From contig CM060731.1 in NCBI GenBank assembly GCA_030704615.1, positions 10,788,001 through 10,852,000 on the forward strand: DNA of 64,000 bases. Reading direction: 5' to 3'. The notes below the pieces were generated by a model that saw only the letters and a program-made list of their open reading frames with translations, was not told the DNA's origin and did not search any database. The number at the start of each line of letters is the position of its first letter. Positions within the stretch are counted from its first letter, which is position 1. The translations under genes and the position numbers were made by a program. Below are positions 5,802 to 57,400 of the stretch, one piece after another. Origin of the DNA: Takakia lepidozioides (taxonomy: Eukaryota; Plantae; Bryophyta).

Positions 5802-8800
5802 CTATGCTCCATTTGCAACCAGTGAGCTTGGAATAAGAACATCAAAATCAGCGACCGTCCACTCGGCTGTTTGGGAGTGACTATCAATGTAGATCTCTGT
5901 GCCTACATCTATTGATGGCCACACCCGGGTAGCCGGTTGCGTCCCAGGGTCCTGCGATGTGAATTCAGCAGGAGATGAATGAGATGCTTGGCTATCACAA
6001 TTGATTGACACCTATTCCAAAGTGTCACGCCAATGTTACAATGAATATCCAGACACAAGAATGCTAGCAACGAATGAGAGGGAGTGAGGAGATTTTGAAG
6101 GAGAAAAAATAATGATTGATACACACATTCTACCTTAGCTCTTCCTCTTCCTTCCCCCATTGTCTCCTTCCTTCTATTTACAGCATGGCATACACCAATT
6201 AAAACAGCCAGATACTGAGATGCCAGCAATTGACTGTAGCCACATTCACAAAAGAAAAGGAGAAGCAAAAGCAAGACAATCTTACGTCCAGTAGAGACAG
6301 AATGTACTCATAAGACGTTTGCCACAGCCCAAGGACAGAGAGAGAGAGAAAGAGCGATGATCTTCTCATCAGACCCTGCTAGCTTATAGACTTGCTGCCA
6401 TGTATGCAACGACAGAATGGGGGTCACTATCATCACAGAAGGCTTGCTCCAAAGGTAGTCCGTATCTCTTAAGAGTAAGTTGCTTCCGACATTTCAGGAT
6501 TTTCTCGAGAAAGATCCATGCATTGGATTGAATGAAGCAAATTTATTCCTTCCCAAGGCAGCGGAGTGGGACTGTAGGACACATTGGAACTAGGAGAGAA
6601 GGAGACGAAATATGATATATCCACGAGGGCCATGGGATACAACAAACAAAGAAGGTGCAAATGAAGGAACCAAAGGTACTATCGTGCTATGTCTTAGAGT
6701 GTGTGTATGTGTATGAGAGAGAGAGGAAAAAGAATAGGGAAAGACATTATAACATCTACTAAAAAAAAATTCATTACATCCACATGAGGCACAAAGGGCC
6801 CACAGAACGAATATAAGTAGAATGACACAGTAGAACCACATAAAGCAAACAGTAGAACCAGGAACAGAGAGAGAGAACCTGATAGAAGTAGAGACGGTTC
6901 GAAAGGGCTCCCACATCAAGCACCCATGTCCTGGAGTCACCAACCCATCCGTCCCCTTTCTTGGCAGGATAACCATGGACAGCCCACTCAGGATGCGGAA
7001 GCAATTGCACCAGCTCTTGAGCCTGAGGATTGCTGTAAGGGTCACACATATAGCTTGGTTTCTCTGCATAGGCTGCATTTGGTGGTGTACAGTAGAGATG
7101 GTAGGCTGAATAGGGGAAATTTTCCGTGTCATTGCGATAGATCTTTGTCCCATTGATGGAGATGTGGTAGGGTGGGCACTGAACAAGGGCAGTAGACCTG
7201 CATCATTCAAAAGTAAGGTGTTGGGATTATTACACAACAATGTAAGTCCTGAAAGATTTTCTTGAGCAAGTATTTATGGTTGAGCCTTATCTCTTCCATT
7301 TCCAGTACAACAACTATTCCAATACTTGAGATGAACAAGTGTGGCAGGAATGTCCAAAGACAGACAGACAGACAGGGCCCAAAGGGGCCAAAGAACAAAA
7401 GTGGAACAACAAAGAACCACAGAGATAGAGAGAGATTTGAGGGGGAGAGTTCTGACCTGCACCAGTTGGGTGTGTCTGGGTTGATGATCATTTCAACATA
7501 CCGTGTGACATCAGTATCAACACTACCATTACATGGTTCTCCAGTGTTCTTCCAGCAACCCCCTATGTCAATCAGATAGAATTGACTCTGAGGACCCCCT
7601 CCTTGAATCACATCCAGTGTAACAACAACTGTGAAATTGGGAGACACTGGCACCTGAGAATACGACAGAGTAGGAGGATTAAAAACTTTGCACTCCTCCT
7701 CACCCTCCATCACCTTACATGGGACACTTTCTTTGATCCTCTTCAACTACGGCTGTAATTGGTGCAAGGTCGGGAAGTGAATGAAATCAAAATCTCTTTG
7801 GCCATGTGTCGGATGTGGAAAAAGGAGTGAGAGAAAGAGAGAATATTACATATGAGGGCATGGGTAAAAACTCATTGGCCGACCAACCCCATTTCAGACT
7901 TCTGCAAAATCCAATATCTATTACATTGGAGATCAGACGTAATGGATCAAGGTGCAAAACATGTGGTGACATGATCATCTTGTATACAAAATGACTCCTC
8001 CATATTACATTAGAACAGCAAACTTTGGAGATTAACCAAAATAAACAGTGAAGTTCTTATGCACCCACCTGTTTCATCATGCCGCGTGTATCCCATGGAT
8101 AACCACCGGACACACCTTTGGTTGTGTCCGCCCTAAGGTAGAGCATAAGCCACGGATACTTTGGAGAAACTGTGAGCTGGTGTCGAAAAATCCAGCTACC
8201 AGAAGTTGCATTCTTCTGCCATGAAACTGAAAAGTAGGATATGTTACTGGAACCAGATGAAAACTCAGTTGTGTTCATGTCATAGGTCCCATAGAAACTT
8301 CCTGAAAGTGATCCCTGTGATGCTGAGGTTATATTCCCAACCGACGAAAAACTAGATCCTGTGGATGTTGACCAATTGTGGTAGACCAAAGGCTGATTCA
8401 TGCAACCCACACCAAAGCATGGAAACGCTGCTTTTCTGTTTCTTCCATATACACTACTCTCTGTCCTGTTGTTTTGAGTAAATTTTACGGACTTTGAGGC
8501 AAAAGATTTGCATAGGCCCGATGTCGCATCGAAGTTCCCATTCTTTAGCATAATCATCCAAAAATGCCAGGGCTTGGTCTCATTATTCCCTTCACAAAGT
8601 GATGCCAGATACTTCTCCTTCTCAACAGCATAGAGATCCGGATCATCAGAAGCCATGAAGGAGCCTGTTGGGAAGACATTTGCAGTCTGCAACTGGTTGT
8701 CTGCATCCTTCACCCTTCTTACCGCAGTACAGGTCTCAACGTGGTTCACTGAACAAATTGGACGACAACCAAAATTAGGCTCCTTTGGGTGACCAAGGAG

Positions 8801-9322: not shown

Positions 9323-11369
9323 TCTTGCTCTTGTGTGTGGCCCTCCAGTTTGGCTATGAGCGCCTCCGTATGGTGCGGCAGCCTATTTGCTGACTACCTG
9401 CGTCCTGCCTGCCTTTCCCAAAACAGTTCGCATTATTCAGATGTTGTACTAGAGACCCGACACCGAGTGTCCTTCACGAGAGTGAAAGGATTCAGCTCGG
9501 GCACAACTTCACAAGTTACGAATCAATTCAAACTGTAAAGGAACCACCTCTCTGCTGCACCTCGTGTGCGACCAAATGCGACAGAGACAGGAATGTTGAG
9601 TAGCCTCTCTCTCTCTCTTACATACACACACGAACACACATCCCCAGCCTCATCTCTGCTGTCTGAGTCATCAAACAACTCTTCCACTTAATGCATGTAG
9701 ATGAACTGGGTGCATCCCATTTTAATGCAGCTGAGTCATGTTTCCAACAATACCGTATAGGAAGTAGAGTGTAGGATCACCAGCATCCAATGCTCCACTC
9801 TTTTGTATTCATACAGTGCATACCTACTTCAATACAACGACCAGAACTTGATAAAACTTGACTCATACCTCTTCCTCCCTGCATCTCCTACACCCATCTC
9901 TTGTCAAAAACAGCAGCCGGGTAGCAGGCACACTATCCGCAACCGAGCCTCTGCATCTCACAACTAGGAAGTGCGGGTCTTAAATTGCACCCCCCCTTCC
10001 TCCTCCTCCCTGGACATTCAAATGCCAAGGGGGGCGGGGGGGCGTGGAATCCATGCATGACCACCATGCACCGGCCATTATCCAAAGCAAGTAAATGACA
10101 GTTGCATTACCCATGGGTTAAGGAAACACGAACACAAGGGTGATTAGGTTATCCGCCATAGCTGCAGCTGGCCACCATCAACACAATGTTAACGCGGTGC
10201 CAGAATACAAGCATGCCACCACGAATGCTGTGCGTGAATGAACCGGCTCAGCTCTGCCCACACTCCCACTGTCAGGAATCTCTCCGAATATTCCTTGGAG
10301 CGGGTATAACGGCAAACGGTCGGTGTGTCCCTTTAGGACTTAAATGGTCTCACCAGTCACACCCGGCGGCACCTCCATCCTTAAACACATGGGTAGTGCC
10401 AGATCTAAGCCTGATTTTCCCATCCCAATGCCCGTGCTTTGATATGATGTTGTGAATGTTATGATTTGTTTATGCAACAGTTCCATATGGTTAGAAAGCC
10501 TCGTCCCCCGCTGATGATGGGCGTGCAGATTGATGCAAAAGAATAGTCATGGGACTTGTTCTTTCAATATGCTGCCAAAAGAGCCTACTGCATTACCTCA
10601 GCATCTATACACGAAACGGGATAACGGCAGAGGGGATGTGACCTCAATGGTGATTAAAACTGGGGAGCAATATGGTCTGGAACAAACCGGGACCACCTAA
10701 AGAAAGTGCATTCCTAATTTGGGCAAACTGCCAACAGGATCCTGAAAGCATGTTGTAACATAGGCATGGCACAAACTTTGGAGCGCTGCGTTCTAGGTAC
10801 CTTGAACATCAGTCTGACTTTTTCAAGTGCCTCTACCAGGAATCAAGGGCCGCTATCTTCGAATAAGCTGAGCACTGCGAGAACTTAACTACAAGAGTAA
10901 GAATAAATTAACTGTCAACCCATGTCCTATCTTTGAATCTCTGCGAAATAGCACGGTCCTCCGGAATCTCGCGTGTGGTCGCTCTCAAGAACTACACTGA
11001 CCACTTCAATGCTAGTAGTTCCTGTTAAATTCTATGAGATGCAAATTGTGGGTAGAAGGGTAAAGCTTGGGAAAAGCCCGATCTATAGACATCGGAAGGA
11101 ATGTAACGCTTCAAGAGCACCGGATCCATAGCAGATTCCAAACTACATACTCTGGGGCGCCAAGGGATGTTCTGATGGAGCGCATCATCAAACGATTGCA
11201 GCTGGACAGCGCAGCCTCCGCCTCACTCCCAAGGCCACAACTCGACACTGGCGGCCCCACTCGAACTAGGCACCACAAAAAACAAAGGGAAGTTTTGTTG
11301 GCTCTCTTGTAGAGAGAGACATGCAAGTCAATGGAGAAAATGTGGTCAAAGTACCTTACACCGTGTCAA

Positions 11370-31866: not shown

Positions 31867-33020
31867 CTAGCGACGGCAGACAATTCCTCCTGTCTTGCTG
31901 ATTCCAGTGTTACCGCACATTGTGCGGTAGGTTGGCAAAGCCAGCATATTGGGCATAGCTGGATCTGAAGAAAACTGGCTTACTTTGCAATCCGTAGACA
32001 TAAGGGACGTGGATGAAAATTTATCGTTACCTCCCATGATAGGCATGGGCACATTTCTCTTCACTGGGTTCTTGAAGCCTGGCTGGTAGGTCTGTCCCAT
32101 GACACCATCCACAGTCGCGGACAGATTGAAGAAGTTGAATTGCATGTCCAGATGAGCGAAGCAATCGTCCTCGGTAATCTGGTAGTTGTGAACCTTGCTT
32201 TCCTTCTCAGTGACAGGCACTGCACTTACAGACACTGCCATCAACTCCTTGATACTCACATACACACTGTTGGTGTCAGTGATGCGCTCCACAGATACTT
32301 CAGCGTCAGCGGAGGTCCAGATAGAACCCTGGCCTTCAGAGATGAAGAAAGGCATGCCGTCGTAAGAGAACAAGAGCAATTGTCTCATCCCATTTACTCA
32401 CAATCCTAGCCTCGACACTGAGTTTGTGGGAGCCAAACACAAAGCCAAGGGCCTGCACCCATGTGTAATCACGTGTCCTCCCCTCGGGCCTCTTGCCAAT
32501 AAAATGAGCGTTGATGTGAAGGTTGCGGTCAGAGACTAGACAGAAATCCTGGTCTTTCTTCCCATGGAAATAGAACATCACACCGTCTCCACCAATGATG
32601 CGGGGGTCGTAGCATATGGCTCCTAAACTGTGGCACAAAGACTTGCGATCTGCAAAACAGAGCACGAAACGCCCATACACATGTTCATTGCCACTTATAA
32701 TGTACATATGTCCTAGCGCCTCGATGACTCTGCCCAGCATGTACATTGGAACACGAGTTCAAGTTACACTGGAAGAGGAAAGAGAGTGATACTAACGTTT
32801 GCAGGTGGCCTCGCAGCTCTCGTCACAGTCACCAGCAGGCCCTCCCGTCACGTTCACGTAACAGGCGTTTCGGACACCTGTCGGGGCATTCGATCTTCTT
32901 ACCCTGGCATTAGGAGTCCTTGGAGCAAGTCATATCATCATTTGCCATAGTCTGTACCACTAGCACGGACAGTAAAACCATCGCTATCCGGCTGAGCCAT
33001 ATCTAGACGTAGACATTGCT
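31867..33020 (-). pseudogene. Root-cap / LEA-related protein (Root_cap family) pseudogene, intron 32650-32796
   Basis: CEATCK|HRKSLC..CYDPRIIGGDGVMFYFHGKKDQDFCLVSD..HINAHFIG, DDCFAHLDMQF..VDGVMGQTY..MPIMGG. Lesions: in-frame TAA and a frameshift in exon 1, and a frameshift at ~32385. TATATAA upstream near 33125. Confidence 0.88.
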
Positions 33021-44769: not shown

Positions 44770-47700
44770 CTTTTAGCCTGTAGTCACCATCTTGGCAACC
44801 ATCCAGGCTCTAGGATTTAACGTGCTACAGAAGTGTAGGCCTACGGAACGGTAGTGCTGCACACTCATCCAAGACATCTGCTCCAGCTTCCATTGCTCTC
44901 ACTCCTTAACAGCTGTCAAGTGGTCCCATAAAAAAACTCCCAGCTATCAAGACTTCATGGAATGGCATGGAATGGCATGGAATGTGACAGTCACCCGTTA
45001 TGACTGTGCTCAGACAAACACATTAAAAGTGGCACCCATATGATAAAAAAGTGCTTACTGAATTGCTGCCTTCACTTTTTGGCAGCCTGCCAACAGCAAG
45101 ACAATTTCAGTGCAGTTGCCTATGTTGCAGTTCAGGCACAGCCATGGGAAGGTGAGATAAACACCAACAACTTCAGTACATTCTTGGCAACTGGGGAGCA
45201 TTTATCGGCGAAGACTTCATTGTGACACATGAAAGCCTCGATTTTCAAGGCGTGTGTAGGGAGGCTCTATGCACATACCAAGCCTCCTCACATTGTCAGC
45301 AACCCCTCTGTACAATCCCTGCCATTTCAAGTTGAACCAACCAAAGTATTTGTCTATTATCATACAGCAGCTTACTATGCCACTCTGTAAAACGTTCAAT
45401 CCATTGGTGTGAGTATGCGCAAGGTAAGCTCTGGCCATGACCTTAACAAGCTAACTTCTTGGGGGAAGTCCCTAATGCTCAACGATGTGACATGCTCCAA
45501 ACAACTGATACCAGGACATTACAAGAAAAGACCTACTTTTCTCCAAGGCCTTAACTACAGCCACACGAGCATCAAAGCGTTTCATGCCTTCATATGCCTT
45601 GCCCCCATTGATGTTGATCTTGCATCATCCGTGAAAATGTTGATAAACTCCAATCTATGTCGCTTTCCCACCTCAAAATTGTTGGGGTCGTGAGCTGGGG
45701 TGATCTGCAGGGATAACGGAAGTCCGAGTGCTTTTGTTGTTTATACTCCCAAAGGAACTCTATGCTACTGCAAACCAAATGTTGCTCACCTGTCCTACTG
45801 TCTGTACAAATGTGAAAGACAGACAACTTCATTTCCAACAAACCCATGACAAAACTACAAAACCTCAGTAGTCAAATCTCACCTTGACAGCACCTGTTCC
45901 AAATGCCATTTCAACAAGCGTGGCATCACATATGAACGGGGATCGGGAGCTTCGTCCCCTTGAACAGATGCAGTAACAACTTGCCATGAAGGTGCTTGTA
46001 GTGTGGGTCCTCAGGGTGTACAGCTACGGCTGTCTCCAAGCATAGTTTCAGGCCTTGTAGTGGCCACCACAATTTCACCCAGCCCACCCTCCAGGGGGTA
46101 GCCAAATGAGGTGATAGCACCAAATTCCACAGGTTTTTCATACCCTAGTACTCGCCTCAATGTCCGGCCTTTTAGGTCGATGTAGTCAACCTGTATAATT
46201 CCCACAGCTGAGTACTTTCTGAGAAACACTTAATTTGGACAGCCACCACAAAAGACATCTTCTACTTATCACTGAAGTTCTATGGTATAAGGACACAAAG
46301 GGAGGAGGCAGCAGAAAACAGGAGGAGAGTCTGATGGTCTAGGGCCCAGAAAATAAGTAAAATCTACATGTTGGGAGGCAAACACAAAGATGATATATGT
46401 GCACACACTAGGGGTCATAACAAAGCACACACTAGGGGTGAGCCCACCTCTATATCTGAGATAGCAATTCTAAGCACGCAATCCCAGTTCACAAGTCAGT
46501 TGTCTCTGCAAGAACAACCAGCAGCTTACCAAATAAGACCATTTTGTGATATCCCTGTAACTGACGCACCAGATGTGTGCTAACTGTGTCGAATGCAAAG
46601 AACTGTTATTCCGACTCCTGAGACTTGTACAGACAAATGGGAGAACAAACACTCATTGTTGACAGTTGTGTGCTAAATTGGTGTCAAGTGCCAAGAACTG
46701 TCATCTCAATTCCCAAGGTTTATCTTCGCAAATGGGGCATGAATAAGAACCACTCAGCAGCAGATTCATATTTGAAGAGGCTAAATTAAAAGGTTCCTTC
46801 TTAGAACAGGATGACAAAGGTTAGTGTCCACATCAAAAACTAAGTCTTAACCACAAAAACAGACCCCCTGCCTGGTAAGCATTTTGTGCCCATTCTCAGA
46901 GAGTTGAATAGGTACAACACTGCTTAAACAAGGAAAACAACGGGCTAAATGATTGACTGAGAGACTTCTTTTGAGAGAACTATATACAAGTTTCAACAAC
47001 CATGATAAAGGGGAAAATGACTAAGTACTGGTTGGGAAAGGGGATGGGAAATAGACCTGTAAATGAGACCCTGCTTATGCAACCTCACAAACGCTTCTGT
47101 TACTGCCTTAGACAACTTGTCGTCCATTGTGAAACACTGTCATCCTCCATTCACCCCCTCTGCCACTTAGCTCTAACCTTTTTAATCCAGACTTTTGTGG
47201 ATACTTGTTCAATAAATTCCACTTTCCAATTAGCAAGAGGGACAAATAAACCATGTACACCTGCAATTGATGCACATCCACCACAGGCATTTGCTTGGTC
47301 AAAACCAATAGTATAGCAAAGGAACCTAGGTTGTCAAAGACCTAAAGCATATCATATATGGGGGGAACGTGAGATAAGAAAGGGGGAGATAGGTGTACCT
47401 CAGCCACAAATTGATCCCACCCAAGATCATCCCGGATCATTTTTCTCTCTCTCATTATCGTCTTCTCTACCACTACCTGCGCAAACCAAAAGCACGGCCT
47501 TAATAAATGTCTGGCCTTACATAATCTGACAGTTGATTGCAAAAAACCTCACTGTAGGACTCCTGCCCTCACGAGGAGAGAGAATTATGCAGTACCTGGG
47601 TGGCAATGCCAGCATGGTCAACCCCTGGAACCCACAGAGTATTGTACCCGCTCATCCGCCGCCACCTCACAATCATGTCCTGCAGTTCCATCAACAACTA

Positions 47701-50410
47701 AGTGGTTTAGATACAAAAACATGACAAATGTCTGAAAAGTAGTGTACTGCAGATGGTCAAGTTCTGACTTTGTTGGGTCAAAAGATCTACCTCAACTGCA
47801 CCTGTGAGACCATGACCAGCGTGGAGTGCTCCTGTCACATTTGGAGGGGGGGAGGGTATCACCTGACCAAAACCAGTCACATAACCATTCTTCCCACAGT
47901 GTTAGGCATCGCCATTCTTGAGTTTGTGAAACAAATTTGGACAGTTTGGCTTCCAAATTATTCAACTGGATTGTGGAGAAAAAGTACAAACAACCGACAC
48001 TTACGATTGTAAAGGGAGGTTTCTTGCTCTGGGCGTCAGCAACAAAGAAGCCTTCTCCCACCATTCATACCACCTGCCACACACGTGCTCTCCAAAGTAC
48101 GTCAGTATCACCAGATTGCAGTGTGTCCTGTCTTGATAAGTTTCTTGACATGAAGGGTGAACTGTTAATCCCCTGACAAATTAGACCCAAAGCCAATTTA
48201 TTTTCTTTCTCTAAAACAAAAGGAGAAAATTGGAAATGGAAGAGATTCAGAGAAGCGGCTTATGGATGGGGACATACACGAGATAATTAGGGAGAGGAAC
48301 GTAGGAGCACTCAACAGCCTTGGGACTATAGGATTTAGCCATCTCTGGAGCGAAACGCTTCTTCTCACCCGCAGGAGTGGGCGGGTCAACCGCCTCAGCC
48401 TCATCTGCAATAGATGCTGCCTTCTTTGCCTTCTGCTCTGCCTTCTTTTATGGTTGCGCTGGAACTTTGGCAGCCTGTGCTTTTTGTGCTGCCTTCAGTA
48501 TCAAACCTCCATCATAATTGTACCTAGTCATAAGTTAGCAACTTCATGAACTTGTGTAATTGGGTGACTTCCGACCTCTCCCTAGCCTGCACGCATCATA
48601 CTGCTCCCCCGCAAGCACGGCTCCTCCTCAATCCCTCTGCCTCGCGTACATTGCATCCACGTGGCAGCACGGCCTTGTCTTTTCAAATGGGTCCACACAA
48701 CAACAAGTGGAGCATCTTGTGTGGCTCATTCCTGAAGCTCCTCAAGCCAAATCAGCAAACCTTGCAGTCAAATCACCGCATCAATAAGCATTCCAGCGAA
48801 AGCTCACCATGTCCCACATTGAAACTTTACACGCTGTAGGACAATAGGACAGTCTTGGCCCAATTTATGACAGGCAACAGCTGGACAGCCTTTTCATCCA
48901 TAATAGTCAAATCATATTCCACGACGTATGACTTACGATAGAAGTGCCTAAACTTCCACAGATCATCGATGATGATGGCAATCCCTTCATCCATAAGGGG
49001 GATAACCTGATTTCCTGGTGTAGTAAACAACCTCACAAACGCCTTGTGAGACGACTCCCCTGATGGAATGGGTAGCGAGCATATCTTCAACCACCCTGTC
49101 ACAAAGTTGTCCCACTGCTGATAGAACCCCTCCAAACGCTTAGCTATGCCGAACGAGTCACACTTTGGAATTTGCAAGTGGAGGAGGAGCTGCTCCCGTA
49201 GTGTCTGCATCACAAAAACACACTTCCCTAGAACTTCGACATTCTCCACAAAAATGCGATCCTCAAATAGAGTGCCAGCTAGACTAATATACTGCCCATC
49301 CCTTCGAATGGCAAGTATGTTTTCCTTAGCTCGATGACAAGTCTACAAGATCCACCTCCTTCCCAACACCTTCAACTCGTCTGCCCATTCCACAATCTTC
49401 GACGGATCCTGGATCTTTCTAGACTCGAATCCAATGTCAATGTCCTGCGAAGTTGCAGTATTTCTTAGGAATGACCCAAAAAGCAAGACCCTCTAGACAT
49501 TCGGTTTGCTGATGAGGTATGCATGTATCGGTGCCAGGATCTTGTGGTGGTCATCAGAACGCTCCAGAGAAAGGGGTGGGGTTGTGTTTGCTAGGCAAAG
49601 CTCCTCCATATCGTATGTGATGGCGTCATTTCCATAAATCTCCCGCCATACTACCTCACTACTTCCTCCTCGTCAGAAATGTCACGGAAGAACAACCGGG
49701 AAAGTGCCAGCTTCAACTTGACGGGTGTGTCAAGCAAAGAATGCAAAGCCAATATCTCCGATGAAGGTGTCTCCAGCAAAGCCACATTATAACCCTGCAC
49801 AATGTCTCACTTCTTTCATGGTGGCGTCTATCTTAAAAGCCAGGGAAGGGCCAAATGGGAAGCACTGCACTCGTAACTGCCAATCCTACTCCATGGTAAC
49901 TCACTGCACAGATGCTGCCCGATTATTTCAACCCTCAAAACAACGAAACCCTAAACACACGATATCGTTCTCCCGAAGCCCTCTCCCCAAGCTTCATAGC
50001 TTCAAATTATAGGACCACCGAAGTCCCTTACCAGAAATACCTGCGAAACCAAGGACTCTCTTTTTAGCTATGCAGCTGAACATTATACTGGAAAAAAAGG
50101 TGCAACCTAAATTGAGCAAATCATATCTTCTGCATAGCAACTGCTCTTAGTGTGGCATTGCTCGCAAGGAAGAAGACAGACGAAACTCACTCAACCACAG
50201 TCTCTCTCTGTCTCTCGCTCCCTCTCTCTCTCTCTCAACACACGCATCATCACCCCAACTAAAAAACTATATGCAATGCCCCAAATGGCCAGTTCGCTGA
50301 CACAATCAAACATGCTATGCTACATACCTTCTCTTCTTTCTTTTTGGATCTTCTTCATTTGCTCCATCAGCTCCTTGTCCGACGTCCAGCATTCCTCATT
50401 CCGGTAAGTC
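44770..50410 (-). pseudogene. VARS: Cytosolic valyl-tRNA synthetase pseudogene (intron-containing, decaying toward the 3' end)
   Basis: Exons encode KKKEEK|, DPPTPAGEKKRFAPEMAKSYSPKAVE, GFFVADAQSKKPPF, PPNVTGALHAGH (HIGH), [72 protein letters not shown]. Many stops and frameshifts; C-terminal half largely lost. Confidence 0.92.
48827..49894 (-). pseudogene. Fused MNT (minimal nucleotidyltransferase) + HEPN (HepT-like RNase) ORF, disrupted
   Basis: RVLLFGSFLRNTATSQDIDIG (GS-x9-DxD, 49477-49436), KEVDLVDL (in a locally shifted frame) and IRRDG, then in frame IAKRLEGFYQQWD..IPSGESSHKAF..IDDLWKFRHFYRKSYVVEYD (R-x4-K-x-Y at 48949-48926). TAG stops at 49495 and ~49345, plus frameshifts. Confidence 0.75.
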
Positions 50411-51210: not shown

Positions 51211-51485
51211 GACTATGCATGAGGCAAGGTCTTCATCGGGGACAGTAACCGCTAGCCTTGGTTCCAGAGTGTTGCTGGGAGAGGATACGAGGAAGAGTTA
51301 AATCGGCAATGCATCACCGTTGTTCGGGGTAGGTTGAGGACTTATGAAGAGCTTTGGCTTGAAAAGCTGGCAGTTCGGGACTTCCAATGCATCTCAGTGT
51401 GCAGAGGCCTCTTCAAATGTTGGAGTTCAGTGCTGTAGATAGATTTTGCTATCTTCTAAGCCACGAAGATGCGCGCAGAATTTCA

Positions 51486-54305
51486 TTATATAGTCCGTGC
51501 CGCGGGGAAATCTGCCATGTACTTGGTACAAAACCCTAGTGCCTCATCCAACACATACCCTTCTGCCATGGAGCCTTCAGGTTTTGCCTTATTACGAACA
51601 TATCCCTTGAGGTATTTCATTGCCCTCTCCACTGGATACATCCACCTCGTGTTTACAGGTCCACAGATAGCCAACTCATCAACCAAGTGTACCAACAGGT
51701 GAGTCATGACAGCAAAGAACGAAGGTGGAAACTCTTTTTCTAGGAGACACAACGTGATGACAACCTCTTCATGTAGAGAGTGCATATCTGTAGGATCCAC
51801 AACCTTGCAACAAAGTTTCCTAAAAACTCTTGACACTCGCATTATGGCGCGTCGTGGACCAAGTTCCATCAAACCACGTAGACACAACGGAAGGATTTGT
51901 TGCATTAGTGTGTGATAATCATGACTTTTCAAATACGTCAACTTTCCATCCTCCACGTGTTTTTTGTATGCAGATGCATACCCGGTGGGCACCTTCAACG
52001 ATGACAGAGTCTTCAAAAATGATTTATGCTCCTCTGCACTCAAGACGTAAGGGGCTGCTGGCATTAACACCGTATTTGCTCTGCTTCCATGGGGTCGCAC
52101 CCACAAGTCCTGCCAGATCCCATCTCGTTCCAAATCCCTCCTAGATTTCAAAGTGTCTTTTTCTCCAAGGATAGTCTTCACTATGTTTTCACAGAGGTTT
52201 TTCTCGCAATGCATAGGGTCCAGTGTCTGCTGAATGAGGAGATCCTACACATAGATGCAAAACGTGTACAGCCATTAGACAAATGCGGCAATTCCTGAAG
52301 AGATCAAATCATCAGTAAAGGACCGGGGCTTGAATGACAGGCAAATGCATGTTGATCTTGAAAGCCGAATGTTTACCTTCCAGTAAGGTAAGTCGAATAG
52401 ACACGTCCGTCGTTTCACCCCATTAGCTTTGGAAGGATCTGGTACTGTGGATGTTCGGCCTCTGGCTCTTCCATTGCCTACAGCAACCCATTCTGCATAC
52501 TGTATGGCAAACCTTTCGATATCAGCTGCTGTCACAGTGGGGGGAGCTGACCTCTGTTCCGTGAAGCCATTGAAGCTTTTTGACCTTCTGTATGCATGGT
52601 TGCAGGGAAGGTACTTGCGGTGACCTGCAAATATATATTTTTGGCTATGATGCAAATAACGCGAGACCACATTTGGGCCGCAATTGGGACATCCTGCGTA
52701 CCCTTTCGTCACTTGGCCAGCCAACAACCCATACGCAGGGAAGTCGTGAATGCTCCACATCAACATAGCCCGTAGCTGAAAATCTCTCTGAAATCGGGGC
52801 CTAGACACATCGTGTGCCATTACGCCTGTGCTCCACAAAATTTGCAGCTCGTCCACCAATGGCACCATGTACACATCTATGTTTGCACTTGTTACTGATT
52901 CTTTGCCTGGTATCAACAATGCCATCATGGTGAAGAATTTTTTTGTCGTCAACCATGGCAGCAAATTGTAATTAAACAATAGAACTGGCCATGTTGTCGA
53001 TCGTTGGCCGAATGGATTCACACCATCCAAAGCAAGGCCTAGGCGTACATTGCGAGGTTCAGCTGCAAAGTCTGGCCACATACTGTCAATGTGACTCCAG
53101 GCCTTTGAGTCTGCGGGATGCCGAACCAGACCATCGGTACTGGTGTTCTTATGATGCCATGTCAGTAGCTCGGCAATACTCTTGCATCTGTACAACCCTT
53201 GTAATCGCGGTATGAGGGGGAAATGACGTAACACCTTCTTTGGAACGTTGCCACGACCCACCAAATACCTGGAGTTGTTACATTTAGGACAGGTAAGTGA
53301 ATCCTTAAGCGCCCCTCTAAACAGTACACAGCCTTTCTCACAAGCATGGATGGTCGAGTACGCCAATCCCAATCGGGAAATCAATTTCTTGGCCTCATAA
53401 TGCGAGACTGGTAGGGTGTTCCCATGAGGTAAAATGGAGTTCTTCAGCAAAGACAAGAGCTCATCAACAAATGAGTTGGAGCAACCGTGTGTTGCGCATG
53501 CGTTCAAGATCATCAACGCTGCAGAAAGACGACTGTGCTTACTGCCACTGTATAATTTGATTTTTTATTCTTCCATCAGTTTTTGATGTTGGGGATCCAC
53601 AAATGCTCCATCCATCTATCTTGGATCTAGATTTGAACCCATGTCATTCTCATCAAAATCGCCTTCACTCATGTCAAATTGAAATAGTTGCTCTCCATTC
53701 ACATTGTTTGTTTCATTCTGCTGATTGCATTCTCCTCTTTCGAAGGCCTCTTGTAGTGCTCTGGCAATATCCATTCCCACATTGTTGTCTGATGCATCCA
53801 GCTCAATGTCATTGTCGATGGATTTTGCCCCAGCCAGGGAGCCCGTAGAGTAGTCCCCATCTGAGGACTCATCAGAAAATTGCTCCCCGTCATCCTGTCA
53901 ATTAAACCAATGCTATCGTCAATGTTTCCTATACTTCAGTACATATAAAATAGTATTTGCAATTCCATGTTTTATTTTTAAAAACCAGTGCATGATGAAT
54001 GACATTATAAGGGAAATCGACATGACTCATAACGGTCATGCGAATGTTAGTTTTAGTCATGGTGCGCCGTACCTGCATAGTGCGAGTCTGGCGCAAGTAC
54101 GGGTCCCTGCCATAGTTTAGCATGTGAGACTTGACAGTAGCTCTCAGTAGCGGCTTCCCTCCGTGGCACGCAACAACAACACCGTAGTTTTTTCCATCCC
54201 TATCGTCTGGCCAAGGGCATCCTCCTTCCGCCACAAGTGCACATCTCTCCTTCTAAGTCTTGCTTATGCTAACACTCTACCTGAAAAACGTGGTTGCCTG
54301 TACAT
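51486..54305 (-). mobile_element. CACTA (En/Spm) TnpD-like transposase gene (Transposase_21 + DUF4218), 3' truncated; intron 52245-52376
   Basis: IHACEKGCVLF, RHFPLIPRLQ, EPRNVRLGLALDGVNPF, SIHDFPAYG, FDLPYWK|DLL..DPMHCEKN, LKSHDYH, FPPSFF.VMTHLLVHL..GPVNTRWMYPVER..PEGSMAEGY. Confidence 0.93.
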
Positions 54306-54400: not shown

Positions 54401-57400
54401 ATGGCCAATGGAAGTAGCTCAACTCTCACGGCTTACGAGGTGGAAAGGGCAGCCAACGTAGCGGAGGTGAAAGCACAGTTCAAAGAACTGGGACTAGCCA
54501 CATTGGTAGTAGAGTAAGCTAGGGATTCTGAATAACCACATGGCAGCAGAAGTAAGCTAGGAAAGCTGAGTAAGTGGATTGTAGCGCCTTGGAGTGACAG
54601 AAGGGCCCTCGCAAGTCTATGTAGAGACAGATTAGAGACAGAGATGTCAAGGAGGGTTTATTTCCTACACACTCCCTTCTACACCCTTCACTCTCCTTCA
54701 CGTCGTCATTGAGGGAAGTACCTCCTTTACGGAGGGTAGAATGACAGAGAGTCTGCCGAGCAGGTGAGAATGAGGGCCCGCACTCATGTATGAGAGTTTC
54801 TTGTGTGGAAGAAGAGTGCTACATAGGGGGGATTTTTTGCGCGGGAACTTTTTATTGCATTCGTTGTGCCAAAAATCCAAGAATCCAAGAATCCAAGAAC
54901 CCAAGAAATTCACTTCACATTCTTTTGTCATCTTAAGGTTTACCAGCTAGCTTGAGTCCTAACATGCTTGATAGTATGCAGGCTGCAGAGAGCGTTGCCC
55001 ACAAAGGCAGTGCGACAGCAGGCCCCACGCAAACCAGTGGTTGAAGGTGAGCCAAGGCGGTCATCTAGGTTCGTACTACAGCTTCCACCACGGAGCATGG
55101 CTGCAGAGGGAGAACCCGACGATCGACGCTACACTACAGGCGACTCAGACACGGATGACAACACCTGCCCTCCAGACGATGAAGGCACTGGTAACACTAA
55201 TCCCCTCCATGATGGGAAATGGAAGAGACCTGTTGAAATGCCTCCAAGGCCACCTGCCAAACGTCCTGCACCACAGCAGTACATATCACCTGTGGTGAGT
55301 GCTACTCCTACACACATTAACCCTAAGCTCCATCTCCATGTGTATTAGGTGCATATTTGGGTTTGGATCCATAATGTAGACAACACACTGTGGGTGTTGA
55401 TATGCCAGAGTAGAGATCAAAAAACCCTAGTTTGATTTGGGAGGTTCAGCAAAGATGATTTCGCCAAATTTTGGGTCATTCCACTACACCTACATTCTCT
55501 TGTCTTGCTTCATAGGTGGTAAGGGCTTTGGCCATTTGGCATTGGTGATTTGGTGCAATCCCATGAGAAAAACCTAATTACAAACACCAAAGTGATGTGC
55601 TTCTGCTTTTGAGGATATGAACATAAAAAAGGAACAATTGATCTAGCATGTTCAGGAAAGTACTGAAAATACTCTAGTTGTGCATGATTCCAGATGCACT
55701 TGATGTGTGGATTTATCAGTCAGGATTTGCAGTGGCAGTGTCTTGCCTGGATCATGTTGGTAGATGTCCACTTACTGCGTAATGTTTAATGTGGCAGTCA
55801 AGAAGCAAACGGGGGAGAGGACAATTTGTTGGGACCCTTCAACGTAGCCCTGCGCGTGACACATTTGTGCCCATGGAAGGGGGACATGCTCAAAATCCAA
55901 CAGGCTGTTCTCGCCCAGTCCGTCACATCTCGTATTCAAGACAATGAACACTCATGTTCAGCTAGATGTTGTGGTTGTGAGGAAGACAATAGGGGTCATG
56001 TTAAAAACTATTCGCACAGATTTGCGGGGTCATTTTCTCAAGGGGAAAGACAAACCAGCGACTGTGAGTTCTGCACAGTGGGACCGCCTAGTGGCTTATT
56101 GGCAAACAGAGAAGTTTCTGAAATCTTCTGAGAATGGGGCTGCTGCTAACAAGGCTGCAAAGAAACAAAGCAAGACAGGACCCGGTGGAAAGAATGGGGT
56201 TGAAGTTCGTCTGGTAAGGACCTCACTTGCAAAACCTGAAGCGCTATTGATGATGTGGACCCCTTTTTGATGTAGTGCCTATATGGGAAATGTGGAAATG
56301 CATGCAATTTTTGTGCACATGTGTAATCTAATACTTGAATATTTTGGCGCATGCAGGCTATGTCAACTGGCAGGACCCCTTCTTTCCAAGAGATCCAAGA
56401 GGGATCAATGAGCAAAGTGGGTGATCAGCCCACTAGCCCTAGATTGAGTCATTTAAGAAAGGAGAGGCTGTTCATTTTAGTATATTATGTTGTTTATGCC
56501 TTCATTTGTAGTATGTCTATTGACATTTGACGGTTTGTTTGGTAGGACAAGACAAGCACCATCCGCGAATTGGCAGAAAAAGTGTCATTGTTGGAGGGAG
56601 GTATGGCGGACATGAGGAAATTCATGTCTGAAGCCAAGGAGTTCAACAGGCTTTTGGCTATGAAGTTTGGCCTGAAGCTTGACCCTTGTTCCAATGGCAA
56701 CACACGTGCAGGCTCATCTATCGTGGTAGATGGAGCTACACATGTCCCTACCGTGTCAACTCGTCTGGACTCACGTTTTAACATGATTGAGGCGGTTGGC
56801 AATAAACCAGTATTGAACGTGGAGGGTTCACAGTCCATGCGGTCACCTTCTCCAGTGCGAGAAGTCAATGGCAACGGAGACCCAGTTGATAGTGATCGTG
56901 GATCACCTACTTCATCGAGCAAGGGTCAGGGCATGTTACTTGCACAATTTGAACCTCCTACACCCAAACATCTATTGATTTTGGACTTGAATGGATTGTT
57001 GTGCGATGCCACTCACCATGTTCTTTCTGTCCCAAAAGGAATTGTGTCCAAGAAATGTGGTTCAAAGCTCGTGATGTTAAGACCAGGGTGTTGTGAATTT
57101 ATTGCAAATTGTTTGAAAGTCTTTGAATTGGCTATTTGGTCCTCTGCACAAATTCACAATGTCCGGGCAGCCGTCGATTGGATATTCAGGGCGCATGTTA
57201 CAAGGCTTCAGTTTGTATGGGATCAGTCCCACTGTGAACGTGAGGAAGGGGAAAACATGCAGTCCTCATCAAAGCCTGTTTTTTTACAAATGTTTGGAGA
57301 AGGTGTGGAAGGCAATGCCACAGTGGTCGGCCCGAAACACTGTCTTAGTTGATGACAGTCCTTACAAGGGGATGCGCAATCCCGCCTACTCTGGGGTTTA

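Follow-up and report, generated by a model that had tools for sequence, protein, structure and literature searches.

The described systems closest to the locus treated here, a disrupted gene for a minimal nucleotidyltransferase (MNT) joined to a HEPN domain in a 64,000-nucleotide stretch of the Takakia lepidozioides genome (GenBank assembly GCA_030704615.1, contig CM060731.1, positions 10,788,001 to 10,852,000; this whole stretch is called the window, and coordinates are given in its numbering), are bacterial. The folds of the type VII HepT/MntA systems (Shewanella SO_3165/3166, structures 5yep and 7bxo; HEPN-MNT of Aphanizomenon, 7ae2) match those of the window family, but these systems consist of two genes and their HEPN belongs to another Pfam family, whereas the window family lacks the catalytic His and stays below the MntA cut-off. 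A single chain with an N-terminal MNT, a C-terminal HEPN and a Tyr by the HEPN motif is found in FhepTA (SO_1440 of the Shewanella oneidensis prophage CP4So; PMC13000451), where the MNT oligo-AMPylates this Tyr (self-oligoAMPylation); the same paper mentions in passing fused forms in eukaryotes, without analysis. FhepTA is prophage-borne and regulated by two Cys residues, and its HEPN, a DUF86-type HepT that keeps the R-phi-xxx-H motif intact, is toxic, in contrast to the window family, which is of the HepT-like_2 type, has lost the His, carries an extra N-terminal domain and is eukaryotic. The kanamycin nucleotidyltransferase ANT(4') (1kan) and AadA also combine a nucleotidyltransferase and a helical HEPN-related domain without RNase residues in one chain, but nothing suggests a small-molecule substrate for the window family, and the Foldseek alignment with 1kan (about 276 columns, 11-13% identity) has a root-mean-square deviation of about 15 A, i.e., a different domain arrangement. 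According to Anantharaman et al. (PMC3710099), a HEPN domain that is fused to an MNT typically has no RNase residues and is probably a substrate-binding or regulatory part of a domesticated nucleotidyltransferase.

Bacterial proteins of about 250-270 aa with a Polbeta and a HepT-like_2 domain (P0008 and L004-L083, from Cyanobacteriota, Chloroflexota, Acidobacteriota, Planctomycetota and others) have the same domain order as the window copy and share with it the GS and DxD motifs of the MNT, the P-x-G-x-S-S/W-H motif and the Tyr after the HEPN motif. They differ by the absence of an N-terminal extension, by a HEPN motif F-R-H-x-x-R-H-x-Y (R-x4-H, then x-Y, with RHxxRH in 32 of the 34 proteins compared) where the window has R-x4-K, and by an identity of about 20%. 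In our judgement the locus is probably a pseudogene belonging to a eukaryotic gene family which is rare and intronless, is an offshoot of such bacterial single-chain proteins and was passed among eukaryotes.

The disrupted reading frame of the window copy

On the minus strand, from about 49819 to the stop codon at 48829-48827, three frames combined spell one protein-like sequence, in which a short N-terminal extension is followed by an MNT (GS and DxD motifs) and then by a HepT-like_2 HEPN. The initial annotation had proposed an MNT fused to a HepT-like HEPN at 48827-49894; the stop end of this span holds, the 5' limit does not, as homology begins at 49819. All of the strings it quoted are present on the minus strand (e.g., RVLLFGSFLRNTATSQDIDIG at 49492-49430 and IRRDG at 49309-49295), and the open reading frame (ORF) of the HEPN half in the program-made list is 48827-49249. 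A second copy was searched for within the 64-kb window and none was seen; the window holds one copy. Its parts and lesions, in the direction of reading, are listed below (P numbers are proteins compared with the window, X numbers sequencing runs, and organism B a related species).

49802..49819, minus strand: putative start and first residues (MKEVRH), by inspection only and weak; similar in pattern (M-x-x-h-x-[VI]-Q-[DG]-[WY]) to the way P0004, P0006 and P0012 begin
49806-49800 (near), minus strand: first frameshift, from the frame reading
49657..49806, minus strand: N-terminal extension, piece 1 (..SEILALHSLL..LSRLFFRDISDEEEVV); its RLFF/RVF motif aligns with KRLFF/HRVFR of the relatives
49654..49664, minus strand: frameshift of about 11 nt (GTAGTGAGGTA-like, adjoining GTAGTA), frame 1 to 0; absent from the organism B copy (run X7)
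49496..49654, minus strand: 'WREI...TPP...' segment specific to the eukaryote clade, and first MNT helix (HHKILAPIHAYLISKPNV); hhalign match to family alignment A2, E 1.7e-5, positions 74-136
49493..49495, minus strand: in-frame TAG just ahead of the MNT strand RVLLFGS; colinear in RNA-like contig X5 record 11
49370..49492, minus strand: MNT catalytic core, RVLLFGSFLRNTATSQDIDIGFES..ADELK, with FGS at 49480-49472 and DIDIG at 49444-49430; Polbeta and MntA profile matches
49365..49369, minus strand: frameshift (frame 0 to 2) between ..ADELK and GKEVDLVDL; the Calypogeia copy reads through (..LKDLIGKEVDLVDLSSSF..)
49329..49364, minus strand: third acidic motif of the MNT, GKEVDLVDLSSS, in another frame, with VDLVDL at 49355-49338; motif alignment
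49320..49328, minus strand: break with a 2-nt shortfall at 49325-49320 and a TAA at 49328-49326 in the incoming frame; organism B has an additional C at 49320 and an additional G at 49325
48830..49327, minus strand: MNT tail (KENILAIRRDG), then HepT-like_2 HEPN; PF20797 match and phmmer match to P0002
48827..48829, minus strand: stop codon of the family reading frame; relatives end within a few residues of the same point

The downstream part is the best preserved. It reads KENILAIRRDG...PSGESSH...DDLWKFRHFYRKSYVVEYD...SYSV (PSGESSH at 49066-49046; FRHFYRKSY, i.e., R-x4-K-x-Y, at 48952-48926) and is open for 166 codons over 49327-48830, or for 171 codons if the same frame is followed from 49342; because these 3' 171 codons are open, the HEPN half alone shows up as an ORF. 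The 171-aa piece (49342-48830) matched Pfam HepT-like_2 (PF20797) with E 1.4e-7 and 32.0 bits (gathering cut-off 27) over its residues 66-154, and phmmer against 1.84 billion cluster representatives aligned it to the intact 400-aa relative P0002 with E 1.2e-29, a homology far above chance. For the MNT, a 49-aa piece matched Polbeta (PF18765; E 1.2e-4, 22.6 bits against a cut-off of 26.9), NTP_transf_2 (E 6.5e-3) and the NCBIfam MntA family (E 4.4e-5); these scores are below the cut-offs, as is expected of a 49-residue fragment, the domain being split by a stop and a frameshift, and FGS, DIDIG and VDLVDL can each be read in the sequence. Profile searches thus support both domains of the initial annotation, in the order it had given. 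Upstream of the catalytic core, the 49654-49496 piece reads VVWREIYG..TTPPLSLERSDDHHKILAPIHAYLISKPNV, and tblastn alignments of P0002 and P0006 extend to 49657 and 49666, respectively. Piece 1 of the extension, i.e., the approximately 50 most N-terminal residues, was not significant when compared alone with the family profile (hhalign E 0.014, 3% probability).

The five lesions all lie in the 5' half. Contigs of the presumed source run match the window over 48547-50170 with 0 differences, which is not independent evidence, yet counts against a consensus error. Two RNA-like contigs are colinear with the DNA, X5 record 11 (49355-49624; across the TAG, with 1 difference, at 49446) and X5 record 10 (49037-49330; 0 differences); contigs of the X5/X6 type are taken to derive from RNA because they show GT..AG-type (CT..AC) joints in the neighbouring valyl-tRNA synthetase (ValRS) gene. 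Therefore, the TAG and two of the frameshifts are not spliced out. As the initial annotation had it, the copy is disrupted with its frames colinear: it is a pseudogene and no full-length protein is made.

Eukaryotic relatives and bacterial ancestry

At a threshold of E<=0.001, the exhaustive phmmer search with the 171-aa piece returned 9 proteins (one of them, the repeat protein P0007, spurious), and in the phylogenetic tree the eukaryote-borne sequences, the window copy included, number eight. Five relatives are 356-400 aa long and P0003 is a partial sequence of 237 aa; their common architecture is an N-terminal extension of about 110-150 aa, a Polbeta/MNT domain and HepT-like_2. Both Pfam domains of P0002 exceed their cut-offs (Polbeta 33.8 bits, HepT-like_2 40.6 bits), as does Polbeta in P0006 (32.4 bits), and HepT-like_2 reaches 36-43 bits in P0002, P0004 and P0005. 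Two relatives have named sources, the chytrid Geranomyces variabilis (KAJ3184634.1) and the leafy liverwort Calypogeia fissa (CAM6105366.1), the latter being the only plant match among the 1.84 billion representatives. The Geranomyces gene (L003 10001-11071) consists of one exon and has ordinary fungal genes around it (SIR2, SRAP, DEAD helicase, MMS19). The other relatives come from metagenome or run assemblies and have eukaryote-type neighbours, e.g., a TALE homeobox gene and a weak SET domain on contig L002 and an ankyrin-repeat gene on L084, for which the nearest cluster in the Atlas is mainly from Oomycota; poly(A) was looked for at the contig ends of the metagenomic relatives and none was seen. 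Two contigs of a eukaryote-like organism carry near-identical MNT-HEPN genes (L086 6-1307 and L002 1-1155) with different upstream neighbours (a ParA/CbiA-like ATPase in one, a 385-aa protein in the other), the contigs being homologous only as far as about 600 bp upstream of these genes, so that the gene may have some mobility.

The homologous ORF of Calypogeia (L001 9938-10603, CBCUJL010000023.1) holds MNT and HEPN in one open frame of 222 codons. Upstream of it there are two stops, no N-terminal extension and no usable ATG, and this copy is therefore also degraded or truncated. The deposited model CAM6105366.1 (L001 10001-11151) begins at an internal Met after the G-S motif of the MNT and splices from the middle of the HEPN to an unrelated ORF (10990-11151), which removes the HEPN core. 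The window and Calypogeia copies are 71% identical in DNA over about 660 bp only, and their flanks are unrelated. A word-indexed protein search found no match to the 171-aa piece and, with the family profile, recovered only two of the family's own members; tblastn against plasmids gave no match, and degenerate-pattern scans of JGI metagenome contigs and IMG/VR viral contigs gave no relatives.

The weakest informative match, P0008 (252 aa, metagenome), is a single-chain protein with MNT and HepT-like_2. Among GTDB bacterial species genomes, 377 tblastn relatives of P0008 were confirmed, in Terriglobia, Anaerolineae, cyanobacteria (Hormoscilla, Pleurocapsa, Microcystis, Dolichospermum), Planctomycetota, spirochaetes and Entotheonella. 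A language-model search of the Atlas with P0002 retrieved two-domain clusters of about 265 aa, mostly cyanobacterial, and a structure-based search of the Atlas several further nucleotidyltransferase-HEPN fusions in bacteria and archaea. The alignment of the eukaryotic sequences against 34 bacterial fusions (hhalign: 99.4% probability, E 2e-21) runs over 234 colinear columns and both domains, so the fusion is older than the eukaryotic family, MNT and HEPN having formed one protein before this family entered eukaryotes. These single-chain bacterial relatives speak against the fusion having taken place in a plant, as the initial annotation had assumed.

A maximum likelihood tree of 42 rows (LG+C20 PMSF, with caveats for long branches) united the eight eukaryote-borne sequences in one clade (100/100 support) on a long stem. 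Within it, the window copy and Calypogeia are sisters (99/94) and group with Geranomyces and the P0002 set (100/99), and P0004, P0005 and P0003 form the other branch. The WREI..TPP.. segment upstream of the MNT core is absent from the bacterial fusions and is the piece of the window copy that matches the eukaryotic family profile at E 1.7e-5; because this derived N-terminal feature is common to the fungal and protist genes, the window gene did not come straight from a bacterium. Of the horizontal acquisition proposed initially, an ultimate origin outside plants therefore stands, and the direct uptake of a bacterial module does not, the window lying in a fully supported eukaryote clade with a common extension.

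Active sites, selection and further copies

All eukaryotic members keep G-S and D-x-D of the MNT, and the window copy, Calypogeia and the P0002 group keep the third Asp as well. The HEPN motif has changed in most of them: it reads RHFYRKSY in the window, RHFSWKAY in Calypogeia and RHFSRKVY in P0002, with Lys at the position of the His; TQFARVGY (P0005) and THYARAAY (P0003) lack the catalytic His and have also lost the Arg; and in Geranomyces a deletion of about 13 residues takes out the stretch with R-x4-H and Tyr, its MNT motifs being intact. P0004 (RHFARHAY) has the only intact R-x4-H of the clade. Seven of the eight clade members and every bacterial fusion retain the Tyr two residues after the motif (K-S-Y in the window). 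The window copy, with its Lys at the His position, does not have the HEPN RNase motif (R-x4-6-H), and this loss, repeated in the relatives, argues against the self-regulating RNase that had been proposed. Nor is there a pair of adjacent genes, mntA then hepT, since all intact relatives and bacterial homologues have one continuous frame. The bit scores against NCBIfam MntA (NF047752) are 23.3 for the window, 29.6 for P0002, 37.2 for the Calypogeia ORF and 49.0 for the bacterial P0008, all below the cut-off of 60.

An AlphaFold2 model of P0002, built on a seven-sequence alignment, has a mean confidence (pLDDT) of 72.7, with 80-93 over MNT and HEPN and 36-73 over the N-terminal part. In a Foldseek search of the PDB with this model, MntA chains came first (7bxo, 6m6w, 6m6u, 7aer), then 1kan, and the HEPN toxin (7ae2, 7ae9) lower, so that both folds named in the initial annotation were found; the family profile also matches the MntA sequence 5yep_A at E 3.8e-6. 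The N-terminal extension (P0002 residues 1-150 and equivalents) is modelled as beta-rich at low confidence, with weak matches to ubiquitin-like/beta-grasp folds, and a Pfam search with it gave no match. Judging from the conserved residues, the activity retained by intact relatives would be nucleotidyl transfer by the MNT, and their HEPN is probably a substrate-binding or auto-modified regulatory module rather than a canonical RNase toxin. The eukaryotic clade fits the domesticated nucleotidyltransferases described in PMC3710099, and those bacterial HepT-like_2 proteins in which the motif is intact bear more resemblance to FhepTA, the toxin-antitoxin fusion.

The rates of nonsynonymous and synonymous divergence between the window copy (assembled from its pieces, with an X for each break) and the Calypogeia ORF were computed by the Nei-Gojobori method over 209 codons, giving dN 0.22, dS 0.97 and dN/dS 0.227 (0.232 in the MNT, 0.216 in the HEPN). 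Most of the divergence between the two copies thus gathered under purifying selection on both domains, and with a dN/dS of about 0.23 in both halves the lesions are comparatively recent. That other copies might exist had been suggested from the start, and two were found. In organism B (run X7), a 7.6-kb contig aligns with the window only over 48773-49992, at about 92% identity; it has two single-base insertions (49320, 49325) and 11 nt fewer at 49654 and is therefore in frame at two sites where the window copy is shifted, and it encodes the family-consensus A-R-D where the window reads S-Q-D (49450, 49446). In the presumed source run there is a second variant of similar depth with the letters of organism B, so that at least parts of the gene are present in the source plant as a further copy or allele.

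Genomic setting and origin of the locus

The surroundings of the pseudogene are plant-like, and as the initial annotation had assumed the context is nuclear: an intron-bearing ValRS gene lies downstream, and a spliced contig of it is continuous with the HEPN end. The pseudogene thus has plant genes as flanks and, as its nearest full-length relatives, genes of fungi or other eukaryotes. The neighbouring features are as follows.

48305..48500, with exons down to about 46000, minus strand: valyl-tRNA synthetase gene, 5' coding part; spliced RNA support
51489..53516, minus strand: CACTA (En/Spm)-type transposase, two ORFs (Transposase_21, E 2.6e-73; DUF4218, E 1e-40); context, not shown to be part of the gene
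6590-8749, minus strand: DUF7705 gene fragment, ordinary plant gene fragment
31867-32388, minus strand: Root_cap protein gene fragment, ordinary plant gene fragment
56570-57352, plus strand: NIF/CTD-like phosphatase gene fragment, ordinary plant gene fragment

The ValRS exon with the HIGH motif (PPPNVTGALHAGH) at 47710-47880 matches tRNA-synt_1, and TTRPETMLGD is found at 46011-46229. One RNA-run contig contains spliced ValRS exons and continues unspliced up to 48891, and another spans 48466-49206 and reaches into the HEPN half; the HEPN half is therefore transcribed together with the 5' part of ValRS. In this transcript the segment would be either a long ValRS leader or an unspliced first intron, and a candidate splice donor (AAG/GTATGT) is located at about 50328/50327. 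The N-terminal extension of ValRS is Lys/Ala-rich and has an in-frame TAA (48450-48448) in the window copy, so its translation may begin further downstream or this ValRS paralogue may be impaired; reads point to a second ValRS paralogue with higher coverage. In a single RNA-run contig, which is 94% similar to the flanks, position 50327 is followed by 21 other letters and then by position 48500; this suggests, as a lead only, a paralogous ValRS locus without the 1.8-kb segment bearing the pseudogene (48501-50326); direct repeats at the putative borders of this segment are of 6-7 nt only, the level of chance. A (GA)n microsatellite lies at 50196-50247, where short-read contigs break. Reads cover the pseudogene at a depth of about 20 and the sequence from 51486, the end of the transposase, at about 170; the high depth at the transposase indicates many copies, and RNA-run contigs of a diverged copy carry a 675-nt insertion at 51372.

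According to the history that we favour, the MNT-HEPN core would descend from bacterial proteins that were already single-chain, and it would have been inside eukaryotes that the N-terminal extension was added and the R-x4-H of the HEPN eroded, yielding an intact product of 360-400 aa (extension of about 110-150 aa, MNT nucleotidyltransferase, HepT-like_2 HEPN). The entry of the family into leafy liverworts would have come next, the likeliest source being a zoosporic fungus or a microbial eukaryote of that kind. Purifying selection acted over most of the divergence between window and Calypogeia copies until three frameshifts and one or two stops killed the window copy, which is now transcribed only passively, in the 5' region or an unspliced intron of the ValRS transcription unit, as the contigs partly show. 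Several points weigh against this history. In the 42-row tree the stem of the eukaryote clade is long and none of the bacterial groups stands as its specific sister, and hosts are named for only three of the eight clade members. The dS between the plant copies is near saturation and the dN/dS approximate and more uncertain, and part of the constraint could have acted in donor lineages, if the two plant copies were acquired separately. The predicted loss of RNase activity is read from the motif alone, P0004 retains R-x4-H, and some HEPN families function with other residues (PMC3710099). Finally, the RNA status of runs X5 and X6 is an automatic guess, and the contigs give neither strand nor level.

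Other explanations of the locus fare worse against these data. The MNT and HEPN stand in MntA-HepT order, the Tyr by the motif is conserved and the fused FhepTA of Shewanella does self-AMPylate (PMC13000451), so that one might think of a bacterial two-gene MntA/HepT module that entered the plant directly and was fused there, with intact paralogues acting as self-neutralising RNases; this is very improbable in view of bacterial relatives that are already fused and colinear, of nearest relatives that are eukaryotic and have the N-terminal extension in common, of the replacement of the catalytic His by Lys, of MntA scores of 23-37 bits against a cut-off of 60, and of Pfam reports of HepT-like_2 only, with no HepT/DUF86 match. 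An ancient eukaryotic family, inherited vertically and lost nearly everywhere, would agree with the single eukaryotic clade, its specific extension and its deep internal branches, but only about eight sequences are known among 1.84 billion representatives (no other plant, no animal and no dikaryan fungus), the gene has no introns in the fungus, in Calypogeia or in the window, and its hosts (a chytrid, an oomycete-like contig and liverworts) are scattered, which leaves this explanation improbable. Contamination or mis-assembly of microbial DNA into the plant scaffold, to which a bacterial- or fungal-like intronless gene might point, is extremely improbable: source-run contigs match exactly over both junctions, two further studies of the same organism contain the stretch (in one contig it is continuous with spliced ValRS exons), copies occur in a related species and in Calypogeia fissa, and the GC content of the gene (47%) is close to that of the window (45%).

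The two remaining alternatives concern the neighbours of the gene. The adjacent CACTA (En/Spm) transposon, whose Transposase_21/DUF4218 ORFs lie 1.7 kb upstream on the same strand, might carry the gene as cargo or as a second ORF and spread it; the alignment of organism B over 48773-49992 but not over the flanks, the paralogous locus seemingly without 48501-50326 and the mere 660 bp in common with the Calypogeia copy would agree with such a unit. We give this little credence, since the depths of pseudogene and transposase end differ (about 20 against about 170), no transposase occurs within 10 kb in Calypogeia nor near the gene in Geranomyces or L002, the ORFs between transposase and pseudogene have no Pfam transposon domains, and terminal inverted repeats enclosing both were searched for, if weakly, and none was seen. 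Functional survival of the HEPN half (ORF 48827-49249), either as a protein in its own right or as an upstream ORF that regulates the ValRS mRNA, could account for its 171 open codons and for a 5' half that bears every lesion, for RNA-run contigs over 48466-49206 linked to ValRS exons, and for a Calypogeia copy that is likewise intact 3' and degraded 5'. By our own estimate, however, a lesion-free 3' half has a chance of about 7% (5 lesions, about 330 codons), dN/dS is equal in both halves (MNT 0.23, HEPN 0.22), the catalytic His is absent and there is no evidence of translation, and we regard such a survival as quite improbable. The locus is most likely a relic of gene transfer among eukaryotes, and it contains no working toxin-antitoxin system.

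The window copy being dead, its direct biological weight is small, and its value is that of a pointer to the family and possibly to intact copies in related liverworts. Bryophytes are reported to have a high rate of microbial gene acquisition (PMC12513842), with which the MNT-HEPN family is consistent, and cases in which bacterial toxin-antitoxin or defence modules are re-used in eukaryotes are growing in number. The eukaryotic variant of the known architecture is new in its added N-terminal domain and altered HEPN active site; with scattered members in a chytrid, in liverworts and probably in an oomycete-like organism, the family is a testable case of the spread of a toxin-antitoxin-derived enzyme from eukaryote to eukaryote and a natural experiment on the fate of the RNase half after transfer. 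It is possible, though doubtful, that an extension-MNT-HEPN derivative with its RNase His replaced moved between zoosporic fungi, oomycete-like protists and leafy liverworts, was selected there and is still intact and expressed in organism B or as the second copy of the source plant. If true, this would be the first toxin-antitoxin-derived nucleotidyltransferase-HEPN system at work in a land plant, where it might serve in conflicts with microbes or with mobile elements.

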